A stretch of DNA of 64,000 nucleotides, taken from assembly GCA_965644315.1 (NCBI GenBank), contig CBFFRQ010000018.1:496001-560000 (forward strand). Reading direction: 5' to 3'. The position numbers and the translations under genes were made by a program. The first letter of the stretch is position 1. Each line of letters opens with the position of its first letter. The notes beneath the pieces are model-generated. The model ran no database searches. It saw only the letters and a program-made list of their open reading frames with translations, and had not been told where the DNA came from. This DNA is from Caecitellus pseudoparvulus (Eukaryota; Protista; Bigyra: Bicosoecida). Of this stretch, positions 1,502 to 52,742 are shown piece after piece.

Positions 1502-4500
1502 TTAGCTTGACGGCGGACACAGCACCTGCAGGCCGTCCATGAGAGCCACAGTGTGCATGAGCCTGCCAAACAGAAAGATAGGAACCATGAGGGCAAAATC
1601 AAAGGGTGTGTATCCCTCGGGATCGTCTACTTGCCAGTCTGGCAGGGCATCGGCCTCGTCAGTGGCGGCAGCAGCGCCGTCACGACCGCTGGGTGGAATC
1701 TTCGCGGCAGGGGCTGCTGGGCTGCCTCCCACACGAGGACGCTTCGAGCCTCTACCACTGCGTGGTGGAAGGCTGTCAGAAGACACAATCGTGGGGAACT
1801 GCGGCTCCACCTTGCGGGCGGGGACGAGCTTGACGACGCGACGCCAGGTCGGATACCCTGCCTCAACGCTCATGCTTGCAAGCGTCAGAGACGTCCCAGG
1901 GCTTGGAATAGGGAGGTAGCTCCCCCCTGCTGCCTTGAGCAGCGGCGCGGCAGCAGCTTGCACGCTCGCGCTGTCGCCATACGAGTCAGCTGTTGCATCC
2001 TCCAGGTCGGCGGAGTTGGGACCATCCACGCCTGACGTACTGTCGGCGACAGAGCCCACCACACTGCTGCGTGTGTCATCTGGGCGGGGTGGCCTCATCC
2101 CTTGTTGGCTGCTGCTGTCAGCCTTTGCGGGCTGTGGTGCAGTGGCCGGTCCAGCTCGGTGGGGTGCTGATGGGAACAGCGCAAGGTCAGGCGGGTTCAG
2201 GCCTGACTCGGGGACAGGCTCGCAGCGTTGCTGGTGCAGGGACAGGGAGGGTGGCAGGCGTGTGAAGATGTCTGAGAACTTCTGCGCGACGACGCGGATG
2301 ATGGGGTCCAGGCTGGACGTGTTGTGCTGCGGCACAGAGTGGTCAGTCTCGTCGAACATCTCCAGCAGGTTGGGTAGGCGGGTCGGCACTTCCGGGCCAC
2401 CTTTGTTCACCCGCGACAGTCCAAAGGTTGCCGCCTGCAGGTGGGGCGTCGGGATGCTGGCTGCAACGTCGCCAGGCGTGCAAGTGGGGGGAGCGCCCCG
2501 CATCCAGTGCAGGCGGGCCGGCACCTCTGCTGCCACAGATATCCAAGTGGAGTCCGCCTGGGCTGGGGTGCCACTCTGCAACAAGAGCAGGGAGGGAGTG
2601 AACCGCTGCACATCTACAGGCCACCTCTCCACTGCCTTGTGCATGGCTGTCAGCACGCGGTGCAAGATGAAGTGCAGTGCTGAGGCCTGTGTGCGGGGCG
2701 GGCCTGCTGCCGGCTGAGGCGGAGGCAGCCCCATCAGACGAGCAGTTGCTGCTTTGGCTTCGTCCTCTGCTTCCCAAGCCGCAGCCAGGCGCTCTGCGTG
2801 GTGCTTGATGACAATGGAGCACATCTCCACCGCCAAGTCCCCGGCGAGCAGCTCGTTGTGAGAGTGGCCTGGGTGCCCGATAGTCGGCGGGCAGAATGCA
2901 GGGTGGCTCCAGGTGCTCATCGGCAGGGTTTTATGAAGACTGTCCCCGCCGTGGGCCTTCCATGCCGAGTGCAGGATGAGGGTGGCGCGGTTGGTGAAAA
3001 TGCGTGCGAGAGGCGGCGTGCACGCTGCGGACAGTTGCTGCTGCAGCGACTGGCCGCCGTCAGCCACAGACACAGTGCCCCCCATTCCCGTGTGCTCGGC
3101 ATTGAAGGGCACCCCAAAGGTGGTGTGGGCCAGCGCAGTGTCTGTGGCGGCCAGCTGGCGCAGAATACCCGGTGCCTTCGAAGACGCCGAGCTGGCGCTG
3201 TCCCCAGCAGATGACACAGAGCCGGCCGCCGCATCAGGCTGGCGCTGCGTGCTGGCTGCTAAGAAAGCCTTGGACGGCACACCCTGCGCAGTGGTGAATG
3301 GCAGTAGGTTCTCCGCCTGTGCCAGCGCTGGCTGGGCAAAGCTGCGCAGGCTTGGCAACGTTTGCCCCGCCCCGCGCTGCCCCTGTGAGCTGGGCTGGCT
3401 TCGCGCGCCGCGGCTGGAAGAAGCCTCCGACACATTGCTACCGAGATTGTCTGGAGGGGGCGTGGGTGCTGCTCGGGCGCGCGCCGAGGCAGTGGAGGCG
3501 GCACTGGGTGCGATCGAGCTGGAGGGTGGTGCGGAGCGCAATGCTTGGCTGAACTGCCGATGCCCCGAGGCAGCCTTGGCAAGAGGCTGCACAGGGTGCA
3601 TGACACTCTGAGGCTGCGGCCAGTGGTGGTGCAGCAACCTCGGCTGTGCGTGATGGCGGTTCACAGCCGCCACTGGGGCGGCAGGGTGTGCAGGGTGCCC
3701 CCTGCCTGCCAAGCTCGCCTGTGGCGGCTGCCCCCGCGGCAGGACCCACTGCTGCTGCTGCTGCTGTGGGGCGTGGTGATGGGCCTGGGGCAGACGGGTG
3801 CCAGGCAAGGCCTGGGGCGCGGGGGCTGGTTGCTGTCGCTGTTGCTGCAGGACAGGCACAGGCGGCCCGGCGCCCCCATTGTCGCCCCCGGTCTGGCTGG
3901 ACAGCACGGAGAGAGGGGGGCCTGACAGCACCGACCGCACCTGGTCGCCCTCCCCTGGCCGCCTGCCCACAGTCGTGAAGTGAGGTGAGGCCTGGGGCAT
4001 ACCTCGCTGCGACGGCGGCGCTGCGTGCATCCACCCCGCCTGCGGAGGCTGCCAGATGCCCATGCCAGCGCTGTCGTCAAACGAAGCGAGCCCTGCCACT
4101 CCCATGCGGGGAGGTGCAGGAGCAGGCACGGATTGGAGCAGGTGTGGCTGTGCTAGCATGGGGCTGGCTCCGTGCAGAGCAGGGCCTGCAAGTGGCACAT
4201 GCTGCACTGTTGTGCCTGCGGTGGGGTGCGGAGAAACGCAGGTTGCTGAAGAATGTGTCGGCGTTGCGCCAGTGGCAGGGCCGGAACGCACTGGAAAAGC
4301 CGTGACCTGGGTGAGGTGGAAAGCTGTGGAAGCTTCCTGCCTGAACAAGGTGCGCGTGGCTGGTTGGCACAGCGTGAGCCATGCCCACTTGGGGCTGAGC
4401 TGGCTGGCCTGTCACCGCAGGTGCGGATGCTTGCTTGGCTGCAGCCTGCGCTTCATAGTATCCCTTGGGTTTCCGGCCACGTTTCCGGCGAGTTCGCTCG

Positions 4501-46407: not shown

Positions 46408-47369
46408 CTATGGGCCGCCAGTGCTCGAGGCAGCAGCAGGAACGGAAGGTGCGGCAGAGCCACCGGGCGTGGCTGGTGCGTGCTCCTGCCCGTCTCCATG
46501 TTGAGCACTTGCTTGGACAGCGTCAAGGATGGCAGGGATGGTGGCCAGGGCGCCGGCACCCGAGTCTCCACATGCCAGCCGCTTGGCGGGCTGAGGGGGC
46601 ACAACCACCCCGCACAGGATGTCCGTAACCACAGCCAAGTGCCGGCTTGTGAGGGGGTGCTCCCACATGGCTGTGTTCATGGCCGGCGCGATAAGCATGG
46701 GCTTCTGCCCGACTTCCCACGCCCGTGCAATGCAGGTCTGCGCAGGGTGGGCGCGTGCTGGAAGTGCGCACTTCGTCTCAGATCGAGCACGCGCAGGGAG
46801 CGCACCAAAAGATTATCAGCGAGCCCGCCGGCGAGTTTTGCCAGCGTGTTGGCAGAGCACGGCGCGATGAGGAGCAGGTCAGCCCACTTGCGAAGCTGTG
46901 TGGTGCGATTCGGCTGGCGGTGGGGATGGGGCACCCGCTCCCAGCAGAATTCGACACGCACCTCAATGTGAAGCACAGGGTCTTTGCCTACTTGCCCGTA
47001 GTATTGCCACTCGTTGGAGTCCCGGTACACGTGGATGGCCTTGCTGTCCGCCGGTGGCGCAGACGGCACCTTAGCTTCTTGGGTCTCCCAAGCAAATACC
47101 ATGTTTGGCAGGAGCGCAGCAGCTCCGTCAGGATCGTATATCTGGGCGGCATCGAAGAAGCCCCACGCTGCCTCCGTGAACACTGCTGCTACCTGCCAAA
47201 GCCAGCGCAGAGAAGGAGGCATCGGTGTCGCAGCGTCTCAGGGCAGGCAGGGAGCATGATGGCAGTGGCCGGCCCGTGGACTCACCGGACCAAGTTTAGA
47301 TAGCTCCCCCAAGAGCTGGAAACACTTCACAGTGGCCACGCTCCCAGAGAAGCCGACGACAGTTTTCAT
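46408..47369 (-). CDS. PPCDC: Phosphopantothenoylcysteine decarboxylase (HAL3/CoaC flavoprotein), 4 exons
   Basis: GFSGSVATVK, PVLHIE|LRKWAD, APCSANTLAKLAGGLADNLL, PAMNTAMW and catalytic LACGDSGAG. Confidence 0.95.
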
Positions 47370-47621
47370 GGCGTGGTGGCAAAACGTGCCTGAAACGGCA
47401 GCCAAAGCGAGGGAGTCTTCGTGCAGAGTCAAGGAGTCAGATGCATGCCCAACGGTCATTGAAGTTGTGCAGACAATACATTTGATGAAACCTCACACGT
47501 GGAGAGTGTTTGGGCCCCTCGTTCAAGCGCAGGGCAAGTTGGCCTTGTTGCTCTCAGGGCAGAAGTCGCCAGGACATGAAGCCAGCCCGGAAAGCGAAAT
47601 ATCGTGACATGCAGTTCCATA

Positions 47622-48679
47622 TCACCTGCCAGCCCCCGAAGATGCCGAGTCACTTGAGAGAGGATCGAGGGTTGCCTTGATCGCCGGCCTCAAGAGCTCG
47701 TACATGGTCAGGGTGATGGCACCTGCCGGCACAACCCGCACGACGTTTGCGGAGAAGCCAGCATAAAACAGCCCCAGCCCACCATCTGCATACGTTCTCT
47801 TCGTGCAGTCCCACAGACCTCGGAAAGGGGCTTCCCCACTCATGCTGCGCTGTTGCATCCGGGCCTTGAGAACTTGGTACGGGTATGTCACGGTCGTCGC
47901 AACCAGCTTGGACACGCTGCCGATGAGGAACGTGGAGCTCATGCCCCCCAGCGTCTGCCGATCTGCAGGAACAAAGCGCTTGAGCTCTTCGTACATGGCA
48001 AACTGAGCAGTGTGGCGGGGGGGGGGGAGTGGATGCGGGAGCGGCCTGGGCTGACCACATCTCTGGCAGCCTCACCTGGATAGCGCCATGGGACGTGAGC
48101 AGAAGCGCTGGGACAACGCCACGATACAGGGCCAGCGCACCCTCCTCACGAACCACGGAAGTCAGAGCGTCTGCGATGGCGGTAGGGGTGGCGTTGGCAC
48201 GCAGCGAAAAGCCAGCAGTGTGCTGGCGACGGACCGAAGACCCCTCTGTAGTGCTTCCTGCCGTGCCCGAGCTCCTTCCCATCTTGCTGAAGCTGCATGC
48301 GCGTTTTGATCATCCACACTGGGTTGGTGAACATGACCACTGCGGAGCCTGCTCCAATAGCTGCCAGCATGTGCTCCCAATAGGACAGCCGTGTTTCGCC
48401 TGGCTCATGGAAATTCCGCAACACGACGCCCTTGGCGTGCTCATAAAACGGCATGTACAGCCCCCAAGCCATGCTAGAACCCAACATCGCGGGAACCACT
48501 CCCTTGTACAGGGCCATGATGCCTTCCGTGCGCACAATGGTGAGCAGGGCATCTGCCAAGCTCTTGTATGCCCGAGAGGACCCGGACCAGACCTGGTACC
48601 GCACCTTCACAACGTCGACAGGCTGCAGCGCAACTGTGCTAATGGCGCCCGCCAAGGCGCCTGCAATGAGGTTGTCCAT
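47622..48679 (-). CDS. Mitochondrial carrier, folate/FAD transporter (SLC25A32/FLX1-like), multi-exon
   Basis: Three carrier signatures QPVDVVKVRYQ, TNPVWMIKTRMQLQ and TYPYQVLKARMQ. SHGAIQF..YEELK is typical of the SLC25A32 clade. Confidence 0.85.
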
Positions 48680-49014
48680 AGCAGGTGCTGCAGAGCCATT
48701 CGCGTTGCTCCTGCACCATAGCTGGCATCCCAACCCCCCCATGCCGTTGCTGCAGTACCTGAGTTGTTTGTCAGGGCTTTCTCTGATGCAGCGAGAGTCG
48801 CTCCCCCCCCCCCCCCCCTTTCACAGCTGCTCCTTCCATCACATCCACTCGCATGGACACATCCGAGTGAACCCTGAATCTTGGTGAGCGGGCTGGGGCT
48901 GGTGCAGTACCCTCCCGCCTCTCCAGCTGCTTGCAAGCTGCAGTGGGCGAGACGCGGAACTGATTTCCGCTCAAGCTTGCCGAGCTGATGCGGAACCGCA
49001 CAGAGAAAGCCGGC

Positions 49015-49777
49015 ATGGCGACAGCCCAGACCCAAGCGGCAGACCCAAGCCCCCTAGTTCCATCTTCAGAGCACCTTGATCGCGAACAGCGTCCAGACAC
49101 TGGTATGTGCCGTCTCGTGTTCACAGGCGGCATACGTCACATTGGCACCGCCACGCCAACTGCCTTTCCCCCCCCTCTGCGCAGAGGAATACGCCGTGAA
49201 GAACGAACGGGTGAGAGAGAAAAGTGACAAGACATGGAGATATGTCAGAGGCACAGTCATGCTCCTTGTGTCGGTGGGCGTGCTGCTGTAGGTGGCGCCG
49301 TACGCTTTGGCTGTGGCTCACACCACATGAAAGACTCCACCCCACCACGCTCAGGGGCTGCTTCCTATCGAATGCCACTCGGTGGTGGAGGGTATGGTTC
49401 TTCCTTCCAGGGCTCCTCATGGTGCACGAGTACCTCACTGGGTACCGTGGCTTGTGAGGCGCAGCTGCGGTACGTGCGGGCTCATGGCAGGTCTGCCCGG
49501 TCTGCACACTTGCAGTTCTCCTGCTCGACGAACCTCGCGCAGGTAGGATACTGGAACCCTGATGGCAAAGGGTACCGCCCTGTTCCTGCGAAGTATAAGG
49601 AGTTCGCAGCCAAGATGCAGGTGTGTACAAGTGCCGTTGCTTGCAACCCAGCTGGCCGCAACGCATTGGCCTCCTCGCGACCTGGCACAGGCACGATATT
49701 ACCAACACTTGGGCATTGTGACTGCTATTACTCTGGTCCTCACGGCCGCCGTGGTGGCCATCCCGGAGGATTTGTAG
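49015..49777 (+). CDS. Putative membrane selenoprotein (MSP-like), 5 exons, UGA-Sec at 49455-49457
   Basis: Exons 49015-49102, 49185-49287, 49355-49469, 49543-49620 and 49691-49777 (all GT-AG) give ...RYVRGTVMLLVSVGVLLGCFLSNATRWWRVWFFLPGLLMVHEYLTGYRGL[TGA]GAAAVGYWNPDGKGYRPVP...MQARYYQHLGIVTAITLVLTAAVVAIPEDL*. A SECIS-like hairpin lies about 60 nt downstream. Confidence 0.75.
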
Positions 49778-49831
49778 CTCACCTGTCCTGCAAGCCGGCG
49801 TGCAGGCTCCACGCCCCCGAGAGCTGACCCC

Positions 49832-49888
49832 GCACAGACGACGGGGCTTGCTGCAACTGCTTCATGCAGATGCAAGCCCCCGATATGC
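49832..49888 (+). promoter_or_regulatory. Candidate type II SECIS element with non-canonical ACGA core
   Basis: ACGAC (49838-42), GGGGCTTGC (49843-51), TGC, AA (49855-56), mini-stem CTGC/TTCAT/GCAG, AT, GCAAGCCCC (49872-80), CGAT (49881-84). This gives a perfect 9-bp helix II, tandem GA/GA quartet geometry and apical AA 13 nt after the core. Confidence 0.7.
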
Positions 49889-50288
49889 CTTGCCAGGCAA
49901 GCGGTGCGCTCCGGGTCTTTGTGGAGAATGCATGGTGTGTCATGGATGCAGTCAGTGCTTTGGTGCCCCGAGCTACAGGCTGCCACGAGTAGCCAACGAG
50001 CATGGGAACTTCGCTGATGTAGTGGTTGGGTAACCTACACGGGCGCCATGAGAGGGGAGCTCTCCAGGGCTTGCTGGGGGCAGCACGTGAGGGCAGGCTG
50101 CGCTCGCCTGAGCAGGCCACGACGGCTCATCGACGCATTGCCCAAGAGGAGACAAAAACACTGCCACCCTGGAGGCAAGAGTCCAGTGGGGATGGCGCCA
50201 CTTTGGAAGGCGCATTCGAGCTGTCAGTTTGTGCGTGGGGCTGCCCCGCCCACGCCGGGTGCCTGCCTCGCACACACCACTCGCAGCC

Positions 50289-52742
50289 ATGCTTCCCACG
50301 ACGACGGAGGGCTACAAAGGCGACAAGGCGCGGCGATGGCAGGTGGCATGCAGCTCAGTGACGAAGAAGCAGGCTGCTGTCGTCGTGGCATGCCTCGTGG
50401 CCGTGTACATGGTGCTGGCCATGATGTCTGGCTCGGCGGCAGACGTTCCCGGCGAAAGGCGGGGAGCGTCGTCGGCAGCTATTGGCTCTGTGCCTTCGCC
50501 GGAAGGGGAACAGCAGGGCCTCGCGGGGGATTCAAGAGGCCCAGAAGGTGGTGATGCAGTGCTCAAGCCAGATGGGGGACTCCCCCCTGGCCCGCAGGCT
50601 CCCCCGGCGGCAGGCGGGGTGGCTGGTGCGGAAATTGAGCCGCCACAGCCACCAGCCCAAATTGAAGGTGGGGAGCACATGCCCTTCCAGAAGAAGGTTG
50701 TTCTGGAAGACCCCGCGCCAACTCCACCCGCTCCGCCCAGCAAGCTAACTGCAAGCTTGTCTGAAGGCAAAGGAACGTCTCACCCCGGGCAAGGAAGCGC
50801 CGGGGAGCAGGCGTCCACTTCCAGTGCCTTGCCACCGCCGTCGCTGACAGGCAAGGCCAAGGGCTCCTCTGAAGAAGAGCCTCAGGTAGCAATGCCACCT
50901 TCCTTGGAAACACAGCGACCCAGGAGTGGGCATGACGAAGCCAAGCCCGAGGCTCCCCCGCCGAAGCCAGCGGCCACCCACTCAAGCAGGCTGGGGTCCC
51001 TGCCGAAGCTGCCTGCCGACAAAGCCAAGCAGGCCGCCGTGCGGGACATGTTCAAGCATGCGTGGCAGGGGTACAGGGACTTTGCATGGGGGAAAGATGC
51101 CCTGCGGCCGGTCTCCAAGTCGGCGGATGACAACTTCCTCGGCATGGGGGCGACAGCCGTGGATGCCATGGACACCCTGCTGATCATGGGGCTGGTGGAG
51201 GAGTACGAAGCTGCAGAGGACTGGGTACTGCACAACCTGCACTTCACTGCACAGCGCGGGGTGAGCGTGTTCGAGACGACCATCCGCGTTCTGGGGGGCC
51301 TCCTCTCAGCGTATGACCTGACCGACACCCTGCAAAGCTATTTCAAGGTGGACGCGCCCCTGTCCACACACAGGAAGGCCCTGCTGGAGCGAGCAGCCGA
51401 ATGTGCAGATGCATTGAAGTTCGCCTTCGACACTGCGACAGGCATCCCGTACGGGACAGTGTCGCTGGGGCCGGGGCGCCGGGCGTACAACCCGTCTTGG
51501 GCAGGCCGCGCGTCCTCCACCGCCGAGGCAATGACACTGCAACTGGAGTGGGAGTACTTGGCCAAGGCCACTGGGCGGCAGGAGTACGCCACGCTCGTGA
51601 GGCGGACGATGGCTGCCTTCCACAAGGCAGACCCAGAGGATCACCTGCTGCGCACTCGCATCGACCCATCCACGGGGCGGTGGGCAAACCAAGAAATCAA
51701 GCTCGGGGCGAATGGGGACTCGGCTTTTGAGTACTTGGTGAAGCAGTGGGTGTGGAGCGGTGGATGGCGGCGGGATGCGGCGCGGCAGCCTTGGACAGGC
51801 TCCCTGCAAGACATGCCGAACGGGCAGGCTGCCGAGGAGCGTGCATGGGATGGCGCGCTGCGAGGCGGCGCCAGGGCACCTGCCAAGGAGCCCACGCCCG
51901 CTGGCCCTATTAACCAGCAAGTCGCCAGCCAAGTGGAAGGCGACTACTTTGACGCAGTCCGGAGCCTGTATGACAAGACCGTGCACGGTATAAAGAGCCA
52001 CTTGGTGCACTTGACAGATGCGCCGATGCACGACCCACCGCTGGCTTTCATCTCAGAGCGCCAAGGGCAGCGCATCAGCCACAAGATGGACCACTTGGTA
52101 TGTTTTGCAGGGGGCATGCTGGCACTTGGTGCCGAGTCTGCGTGGGGGGCAGCCCCAAAGCCTGGCTGGGATCGGGCAGCGTACGAGGGCTTGCACCAAC
52201 AAGCTGCCGGCGGGGAGTTTGGGGCGAGCGGCGCACCGCCGTCGAGGGAGGAACTCTTGGCCCTGCAAGACGAGGATGACATGCGTCTGGCCGCTGAGTT
52301 GACGCGCACGTGCCATGAGATGTACACCTTCACAGCCAGCGGCCTTGCCCCGGAGATCGTGAAGTTTACAGGCGGTGAGGGTGGCCTGCGCATGATTGTG
52401 GACCCTGGTGCCAAGCACTGCTTGCTCAGGCCTGAGGCAGTGGAGTCCTTCTATGTCATGTACCGCTTGACTGGGGATGAAAAGTACCGCGACTGGGGCT
52501 GGGACGTGGTGCAGGCCATCGAGAAGCACGCTCGCATCGAGAGTGGCGGGTATTCCTCCATCCGGGATGTCACACACATCCCCGTGCAATACCGTGACCA
52601 CCAGGAAAGCTTCTTCCTCGCAGAAACGCTAAAGTACCTGTACTTGCTTTTTTCAGACAGCGACTTGATTCCTCTGGACAAGTACGTGTTCAACACAGAG
52701 GCACACCCGTTGAGCATCCTGGGATCTGCTGCGCCAGCCTGA
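50289..52742 (+). CDS. Class I alpha-1,2-mannosidase (GH47; MNS1/MAN1-like), type II membrane protein
   Basis: N-terminal TM helix and Pro-rich stem, then FKHAWQGY, DAMDTL, SVFETTIRVLGGLLSAY, LGANGDSAFEYLVK, MDHLVCF, LLRPEAVES, ESFFLAETLKYLYLLF and FNTEAHP. Confidence 0.95.
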   Translation: MLPTTTEGYKGDKARRWQVACSSVTKKQAAVVVACLVAVYMVLAMMSGSAADVPGERRGASSAAIGSVPSPEGEQQGLAGDSRGPEGGDAVLKPDGGLPPGPQAPPAAGGVAGAEIEPPQPPAQIEGGEHMPFQKKVVLEDPAPTPPAPPSKLTASLSEGKGTSHPGQGSAGEQASTSSALPPPSLTGKAKGSSEEEPQVAMPPSLETQRPRSGHDEAKPEAPPPKPAATHSSRLGSLPKLPADKAKQAAVRDMFKHAWQGYRDFAWGKDALRPVSKSADDNFLGMGATAVDAMDTLLIMGLVEEYEAAEDWVLHNLHFTAQRGVSVFETTIRVLGGLLSAYDLTDTLQSYFKVDAPLSTHRKALLERAAECADALKFAFDTATGIPYGTVSLGPGRRAYNPSWAGRASSTAEAMTLQLEWEYLAKATGRQEYATLVRRTMAAFHKADPEDHLLRTRIDPSTGRWANQEIKLGANGDSAFEYLVKQWVWSGGWRRDAARQPWTGSLQDMPNGQAAEERAWDGALRGGARAPAKEPTPAGPINQQVASQVEGDYFDAVRSLYDKTVHGIKSHLVHLTDAPMHDPPLAFISERQGQRISHKMDHLVCFAGGMLALGAESAWGAAPKPGWDRAAYEGLHQQAAGGEFGASGAPPSREELLALQDEDDMRLAAELTRTCHEMYTFTASGLAPEIVKFTGGEGGLRMIVDPGAKHCLLRPEAVESFYVMYRLTGDEKYRDWGWDVVQAIEKHARIESGGYSSIRDVTHIPVQYRDHQESFFLAETLKYLYLLFSDSDLIPLDKYVFNTEAHPLSILGSAAPA

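Follow-up and report, generated by a model that had tools for sequence, protein, structure and literature searches.

We propose that the hairpin found at 49837-49884 on the forward (+) strand of the analysed window (the whole 64-kb stretch of DNA, G000:C18:496001-560000) serves, very likely, as the signal for reading an internal UGA of the gene upstream of it as selenocysteine (Sec), with SBP2 binding and Sec insertion themselves being inferred. The canonical UGA core of a SECIS element is altered in this hairpin at the U position alone, which is C at 49839. According to our analysis, there is little doubt that this C is a fixed trait of the clade to which the protist belongs and not a lesion of a single gene.

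The hairpin, its fold and its core

The whole SECIS-like element (49837-49884, +) has the type II form, is the span matched by the covariance model R3 described below, and its ACGA is separated by 60 nt from the TAG stop of the upstream gene (49775-49777). On the 5' side of this element, the core ACGA together with the following C occupies 49838-49842 (A49838, C49839, G49840, A49841, then C49842), and on the 3' side the core CGAU lies at 49881-49884 (C49881, G49882, A49883, U49884), with its GA opposite the 5' GA. Compared with the consensus KGAW, the W of the 3' core is met by U, while the K (G or U) is not met by C49881. GA dinucleotides adjoin helix II on both strands (G49840-A49841 and G49882-A49883) in the register of a sheared tandem, a pairing geometry which we infer from the sequence.

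Helix II is composed of nine perfect base pairs, formed in the RNAfold structure by the 5' strand GGGGCUUGC (49843-49851, +) and the 3' strand GCAAGCCCC (49872-49880, +). The internal loop UGCAA carries the unpaired AA of a GCAA at 49855-49856, and the apical mini-stem at 49857-49869, equivalent to helix III of a type II SECIS, has four base pairs (CUGC at 49857-49860 with GCAG at 49866-49869) closed by the loop UUCAU. Both helices satisfy the SECIS rule of about 9-12 bp for helix II and of an apical helix III. The SECISearch pattern NTGA__AA__GA (PMC2375036) places the AA, or alternatively CC, 10-13 nt past the core and the GA 15-39 nt past the AA; the hairpin has 13 nt and 25 nt, respectively, both within these limits, and satisfies all the SECIS geometry rules except the T/U.

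The structure as such is shown: the hairpin is both the minimum free energy (MFE) and the centroid structure, with -30.4 kcal/mol over 81 nt. In a shuffle test its z value was -2.35 and 4 of 200 shuffles were equally stable, so that the fold by itself is just modestly unusual. Helix I is weak, its best pairing being 5 bp between 49831-49835 and 49904-49908, and this pairing encloses a second small hairpin and gives a Y-shaped junction, a kind of fold that is filtered out by SECISearch (PMC2375036). The second small hairpin (49886-49900, UGCCU UGCC AGGCA) lies directly 3' of the SECIS-like element and repeats its GCTTGC/GCAAGC motif. A geometric scanner that accepts any base before the 5' GA (NNGA...NGA, at least 9 pairs) returned 25 hairpins in 128 kb, counting both strands of the window, which is a low background, and two of the 25 had ACGA.

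An earlier note, made from the sequence alone, had described this hairpin by its ACGA, the 60-nt distance, the 9-bp helix, the AA, the mini-stem and the GA on both strands, and had named RNAfold as a check; all of these claims held, and the hairpin is the MFE fold. Its statement that the rest of the untranslated region has no canonical SECIS held as well, since no canonical UGA-core candidate was found in 49778-50290. The note would also have been refuted by a T at 49839, and the base is C, not T, in the DNA contigs X7 and X13, which come from two further samples labelled as different organisms. Neither X7 (a single 15-kb piece) nor X13 differs anywhere within 49832-49888; 10 differences occur elsewhere in the approximately 450 nt from the stop to the next gene, and the hairpin is variant-free. 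Presence of C at 49839 in two independent DNA assemblies excludes a sequencing error, and conservation of this C in DNA is therefore shown. The hairpin of the SPS2 gene discussed below is, likewise, identical in an independent assembly (L048).

The selenoprotein gene upstream

The upstream gene is modelled as five exons at 49015-49777 (+), with 156 codons encoding a membrane protein, the TGA as codon 98 and TAG as the stop. Exon 1 begins with the ATG at 49015 and ends at 49102, a boundary supported by two separate studies of marine metatranscriptomes, whose RNA contigs join 49102 to 49185 with the first intron spliced out (GT..AG). Exon 2 (49185-49287) encodes the first hydrophobic helix and rests on this splice joint, on the reading frame and on an ortholog found on contig L049. 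The in-frame TGA at 49455-49457 (..GYRGL-U-GAAA) belongs to exon 3 (49355-49469), and both the TGA and its flanks are identical in L049. The start of exon 4 (VGYWNPDGKGYR..., 49543-49620) was revised from 49516 to 49543 on the basis of the similarity to L049, which resumes at about 49540, where the exon of L049 begins IGYWNPDG; intron 3 therefore ends at 49542 and not at 49515. Exon 5 (49691-49777), supported by the frame and by comparison with L049, encodes the C-terminal hydrophobic helix and ends in the TAG. All the exons are on the + strand.

The ortholog (P0121) was the sole relative obtained by a word search with the exon 3 ORF, and it lies on a pair of short contigs from ENA metagenomes (L049 and L050); no further relative was found in the JGI metagenome contigs scanned with conserved peptides. 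On L049 its exon layout matches that of our gene and the TGA is kept, between GYRGL and GAAA. Codon differences between the two genes are mostly silent: 15 synonymous and 3 non-synonymous in exon 5, 26 and 6 in exons 4 and 5 together, and 28 and 6 over the 60 codons past the TGA. The last of these counts shows that the frame is translated past the UGA. We conclude that the upstream gene is, very likely, a real selenoprotein gene under purifying selection beyond a conserved UGA, where the insertion of Sec is inferred, and for the annotation of the window it means that 49015-49777 is supported as a selenoprotein gene and not as a truncated ORF. Pfam gave no family for any exon when four exon translations were searched singly, and no joined or read-through protein was included in this search.

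A metatranscriptome contig, X15 (49450-49600), is unspliced across intron 3 (49470-49542), and the frame in it then ends at a TGA at about 49560. We read X15 as pre-mRNA or as DNA carried over into an RNA library, and intron retention is also possible. Downstream, the nearest gene on this strand begins beyond about 50229. The 3' UTR is not covered by any RNA contig, and it is accordingly inferred that the mature mRNA contains the hairpin. An orthologous hairpin could not be seen in L049 or L050, as these contigs end just short of its expected start (L049 at 58 nt past the stop). Upstream of the gene, a run of about 19 C (48801-48819) is located in the intergenic region between the selenoprotein gene and a mitochondrial-carrier-like gene oriented divergently from it.

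The ACGA hairpin class in the genome and in related species

The genome (30.6 Mb, about 62% G+C, intron-containing) possesses a tRNA-Sec (72.6 bits), and we searched it for known selenoprotein families, seeking members in which a TGA in frame occupies the known Sec position. Three families had such a TGA, SelT (..U-GYRNEF..), SPS2 (..KG-U-GCKVP..) and SelK (..RGGG-U-G, then stop); a fourth gene, an MsrA with TGA at the catalytic position (..ALS-U-FWGP..), emerged from the model R3 described below, and every one of these four genes carries an ACGA hairpin past its stop, at 37, 181, 88 and 67 nt, respectively. The 3' regions of SelT, SPS2 and SelK each contain, according to the geometric scanner, one hairpin with at least 9 helix pairs, which is the ACGA one, and no UGA-core candidate.

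The redox motif of SelT (L005, minus strand) reads ..ICAGTA-U-GY.., with four residues from Cys to Sec as against the usual CxxU, and its relatives have ..GTS-U-GY..; a small intron at this site is possible. MsrA-like copies, near-identical and with a long C-terminal extension, lie on the minus strand of two contigs (L018, G000:C10:34078-37275, and L019, G000:C5:45904-49098), and these may represent either a recent duplication or uncollapsed haplotypes.

Membership of the window hairpin in this class was assessed with a leave-one-out covariance model, R3, built from the SelT, SPS2 and SelK hairpins alone, with the window hairpin excluded. Because MAFFT misaligned the helices, the model was seeded from one hairpin and the sequences were realigned to it. 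R3 matched the window hairpin over the full model length with 35.2 bits (E 6.7e-8), its sole significant match in the 64-kb window, and the next best match, on both strands and with filters off, had 12.0 bits; even when the SelT hairpin was the only source of the model, the window hairpin was the top non-self match in the window (20.1 bits). The window hairpin therefore meets the criteria by which we define the ACGA class, namely a significant R3 match lying within about 200 nt downstream of a UGA gene's stop. Over 76 kb of other loci, R3 returned its three training members and a new pair at 24.3 bits, and it was this pair that led, unprompted, to the Sec-MsrA gene in its two copies. We take it as shown that the window hairpin belongs to a class of hairpins tied to UGA genes.

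Several families of the genome are Cys forms and hence could not serve as test cases: two GPx, the MsrA on C18, SelO (CVTCSS, then stop) and two TrxR-like genes. At the Cys-form loci (GPx, MsrA on C18, SelO, TrxR) R3 found nothing significant, the best E being 0.13, nor did the remainder of the approximately 280 kb of strand searched yield a significant match. The earlier note had proposed to examine the 3' UTRs of GPx and TrxR for the recurrence of the CGA core, which these two families could not inform, both being Cys forms without a significant R3 match at their loci. A weak Sep15/SelM match (L007) was also rejected, being a long ORF without a stop whose nearby 17-bit R3 match has no 5' GA. 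The two TrxR-like genes (L011, G000:C87, and L012, G000:C92) end in ..KQLCCG and a stop, not in the usual GCUG and a stop, and have a Cys-Cys C-terminal redox centre, although the organism employs Sec in other proteins.

A further model, R2, was applied genome-wide and returned only its three training sequences, with 150 of about 5,400 first-look candidates scored. Rfam SECIS_1 (RF00031, gathering score 35 bits) had no match genome-wide, and Rfam cmscan with E up to 10 found no SECIS family in 47000-52000 or in the 4-7 selenoprotein loci, so that Rfam detected none of the seven ACGA elements scanned. It is very likely that these negatives mean that the curated model misses the ACGA elements and do not imply that SECIS elements are absent.

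SelT orthologs of two related species, found on ENA metagenome contigs, have 65% and 48% amino-acid identity, keep the TGA, and are followed 44 and 48 nt past the stop by ACGA hairpins, which R3 scored at 38.8 and 21.2 bits. Together with the hairpins of the studied genome they make an alignment of seven, representing five gene families and three species, in which ACGA and the 3' GA are invariant (7/7). Pairing is found in 93% of the cells of this alignment, compared with 32-51% when the partners are slid, and compensatory change is seen in 14 of 15 pairs, being found in 9 of 10 columns of helix II and in all 5 pairs of the apical helix; these pairing counts are inflated by the fitting of the alignment to the model. 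GCAA is present at the internal loop in four of the seven hairpins, and the 3' cores of the six hairpins other than the window one are UGAC, UGAU, UGAA or CGAG. The partner of the core C varies among the seven elements, being C, U, A or G; no fixed RNA pair therefore holds the core C, which is more likely read by the protein.

These data support the suggestion of the earlier note that the variant is lineage-wide, as the CGA core recurs in SelT, SPS2, SelK and Sec-MsrA and in the SelT of two related species. They also bear out its expectation that such selenoproteins would be missed by strict patterns, Rfam SECIS_1 detecting none of the elements.

Known systems, rival explanations and the proposed mechanism

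The consensus of the SECIS core is given as UGAN/KGAW in SECISearch3 (PMC3753652), and the U of UGA is treated as invariable by SECISaln (PMC2647825, PMC3753652). The window hairpin resembles the canonical type II SECIS (RF00031) in its position after a UGA ORF in the 3' UTR region, in the GA/GA register, in the pyrimidine-pyrimidine mismatch above the tandem, in a helix II that starts with G-C, in the AA and in the mini-stem; it differs in C for the core U, in C for the 3' K and in its weak helix I. We regard the hairpin, with high confidence, as a SECIS variant that fails the sequence definition at the core U and the 3' K, meets the structural and contextual features, and is part of a coherent class tied to UGA genes. 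No description of a CGA-core SECIS was found in the literature that we searched (SECIS with ACGA; SECIS in stramenopiles).

The sole published exception that we found is the GGA/GA SECIS of SelT in Toxoplasma gondii and Neospora (Novoselov et al. 2007, cited in PMC2647825), which is also a natural SECIS without U before the 5' GA. In that case the base is G and the variant is reported for one gene, SelT, in two apicomplexans, whereas the ACGA class has C in five gene families and three species. The very change seen here, at the identical position (the U on the 5' side of the non-Watson-Crick quartet), is known in human: with the substitution 17195T>C in the SEPN1 SECIS, both the binding of SBP2 and the expression of selenoprotein N are impaired, and myopathy results (Allamand et al. 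2006, cited in PMC3541580). The human C is a loss-of-function lesion, whereas the protist C is a conserved wild-type state.

SBP2 binds through an L7Ae-type domain, and in the work of Cléry et al. both SBP2 and Snu13p selected U at loop position 3 (PMC1874613); SELEX with SBP2 of the rat/human type selects UGAU (PMC1874613). From the requirement for U in mammals, evident in SEPN1 and SELEX, it follows that function here would need an SBP2 with a different or looser specificity. The core also resembles kink-turn RNAs, such as U4 snRNA with 15.5K-Snu13 and box C/D RNA with L7Ae, in its tandem G.A/A.G and in a non-Watson-Crick pair above it. Archaeal L7Ae tolerates other bases at loop position 3, and by this analogy a looser L7Ae-like pocket is one possible way in which SBP2 could accept C. 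SBP2 itself was not recovered by a genome search with the Pfam L7Ae family (PF01248), which returned solely RPL7A, RPL30, SNU13, NHP2 and RPS12, and the suggestion made beforehand that a co-adapted SBP2 accompanies the variant is neither supported nor refuted.

Three other explanations of these data can be considered, and we find each of them very unlikely. The C in DNA might become U in the mRNA by C-to-U editing, in which case an ordinary AUGA SECIS would be at work. Such editing would square our findings with the need of mammalian SBP2 for U. Nothing speaks for it directly, and none of the hairpins is covered by an RNA contig. Against it, a site-specific edit of one base would be needed in every selenoprotein mRNA of three species, where a genomic T would suffice, and all seven hairpins have C in DNA. 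It might be supposed, alternatively, that the hairpin is a 3'-UTR element of another role (stability, localisation or 3'-end formation) which merely resembles a SECIS, while the UGA is recoded in some other way or read through. The absence of an Rfam SECIS match, the weak helix I and the missing key U could be cited in its favour. The class, however, follows every UGA gene found, in five families, with no significant match in the Cys-form loci searched or elsewhere in the approximately 280 kb of strand; all but one base reproduce the type II core, the spacings, the AA and the mini-stem; and the Sec machinery is present in the form of tRNA-Sec and a Sec-containing SPS2.

The remaining alternative denies the selenoprotein itself: the UGA would be a true stop, or the gene model wrong, and the hairpin would either be a relic in decay or belong to a neighbouring gene that is not annotated. 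In favour of this reading one may point to X15, which runs unspliced through intron 3 into the TGA at about 49560, and to the lack of a Pfam family. It is opposed by the ortholog, which keeps the exon structure, the TGA and the frame, with 26 synonymous versus 6 non-synonymous differences in exons 4-5, and by the hairpin, which is intact and invariant among strains and has no same-strand gene beginning after it before about 50229.

The preferred reading remains that the five-exon gene at 49015-49777, which codes for a membrane selenoprotein, has its SECIS at 49837-49884, and we propose the following mechanism for this element. G49840.A49883 and A49841.G49882 would form tandem sheared pairs in a kink-turn-like core, flanked by C49839.U49884 and C49842.C49881. 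SBP2 is predicted to bind this core and to recruit eEFSec with Sec-tRNA(Sec), and the UGA at 49455-49457 (codon 98), situated 380 nt upstream in genomic distance and about 240 nt in the spliced model, would then be read as Sec.

A bolder reading can be suggested, which we would at present neither defend nor dismiss: a clade of marine protists (stramenopiles, judging by the named SPS2 relatives) may have re-specified the SECIS-SBP2 contact in such a way that its SBP2 prefers C at the core position for which every other eukaryote studied requires U. All seven elements have C and none has U, and the outside relatives have U, which favours preference over mere tolerance, an inference that concerns only the elements examined. 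If it is true, the whole selenoproteome of this clade would be invisible to SECIS searches anchored on UGA, and a natural, possibly orthogonal, SECIS/SBP2 pair would be at hand. A lineage with C as the wild type would indicate that the U rule belongs to the SBP2 partner and not to the RNA fold, and the ACGA class may be taken as a natural experiment in how L7Ae-type domains recognise kink-turns. The selenoproteomes of such protists would be under-counted by scans of the SECISearch and Rfam types.

The range of the variant can be judged from SPS2. Three SPS2 relatives with 61-67% identity (L041, L042, L046) have well-formed candidates whose cores are UUGA or GUGA, and since UGA-core candidates are thus found in the nearest outside relatives that were fetched, the C was likely derived within a limited clade. 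In the SPS2 tree the studied genome stands alone on a long branch. The cores of L041 (67% identity, candidate at +490 past the SPS2 stop) and L042 (63%, at +246) are UUGA, with U, and not A or G, before the UGA. One more Sec-SPS2, on a JGI metagenome contig (L043, 63% identity), does not group with the SPS2 of the studied genome in the tree, and is followed 731 nt past its stop by a 13-bit ACGA hairpin (3389-3425), type-I-like with a good helix I, the sole SECIS-like structure within 1 kb past that stop. This hairpin may be a chance match, or it may represent a second origin of the C variant.
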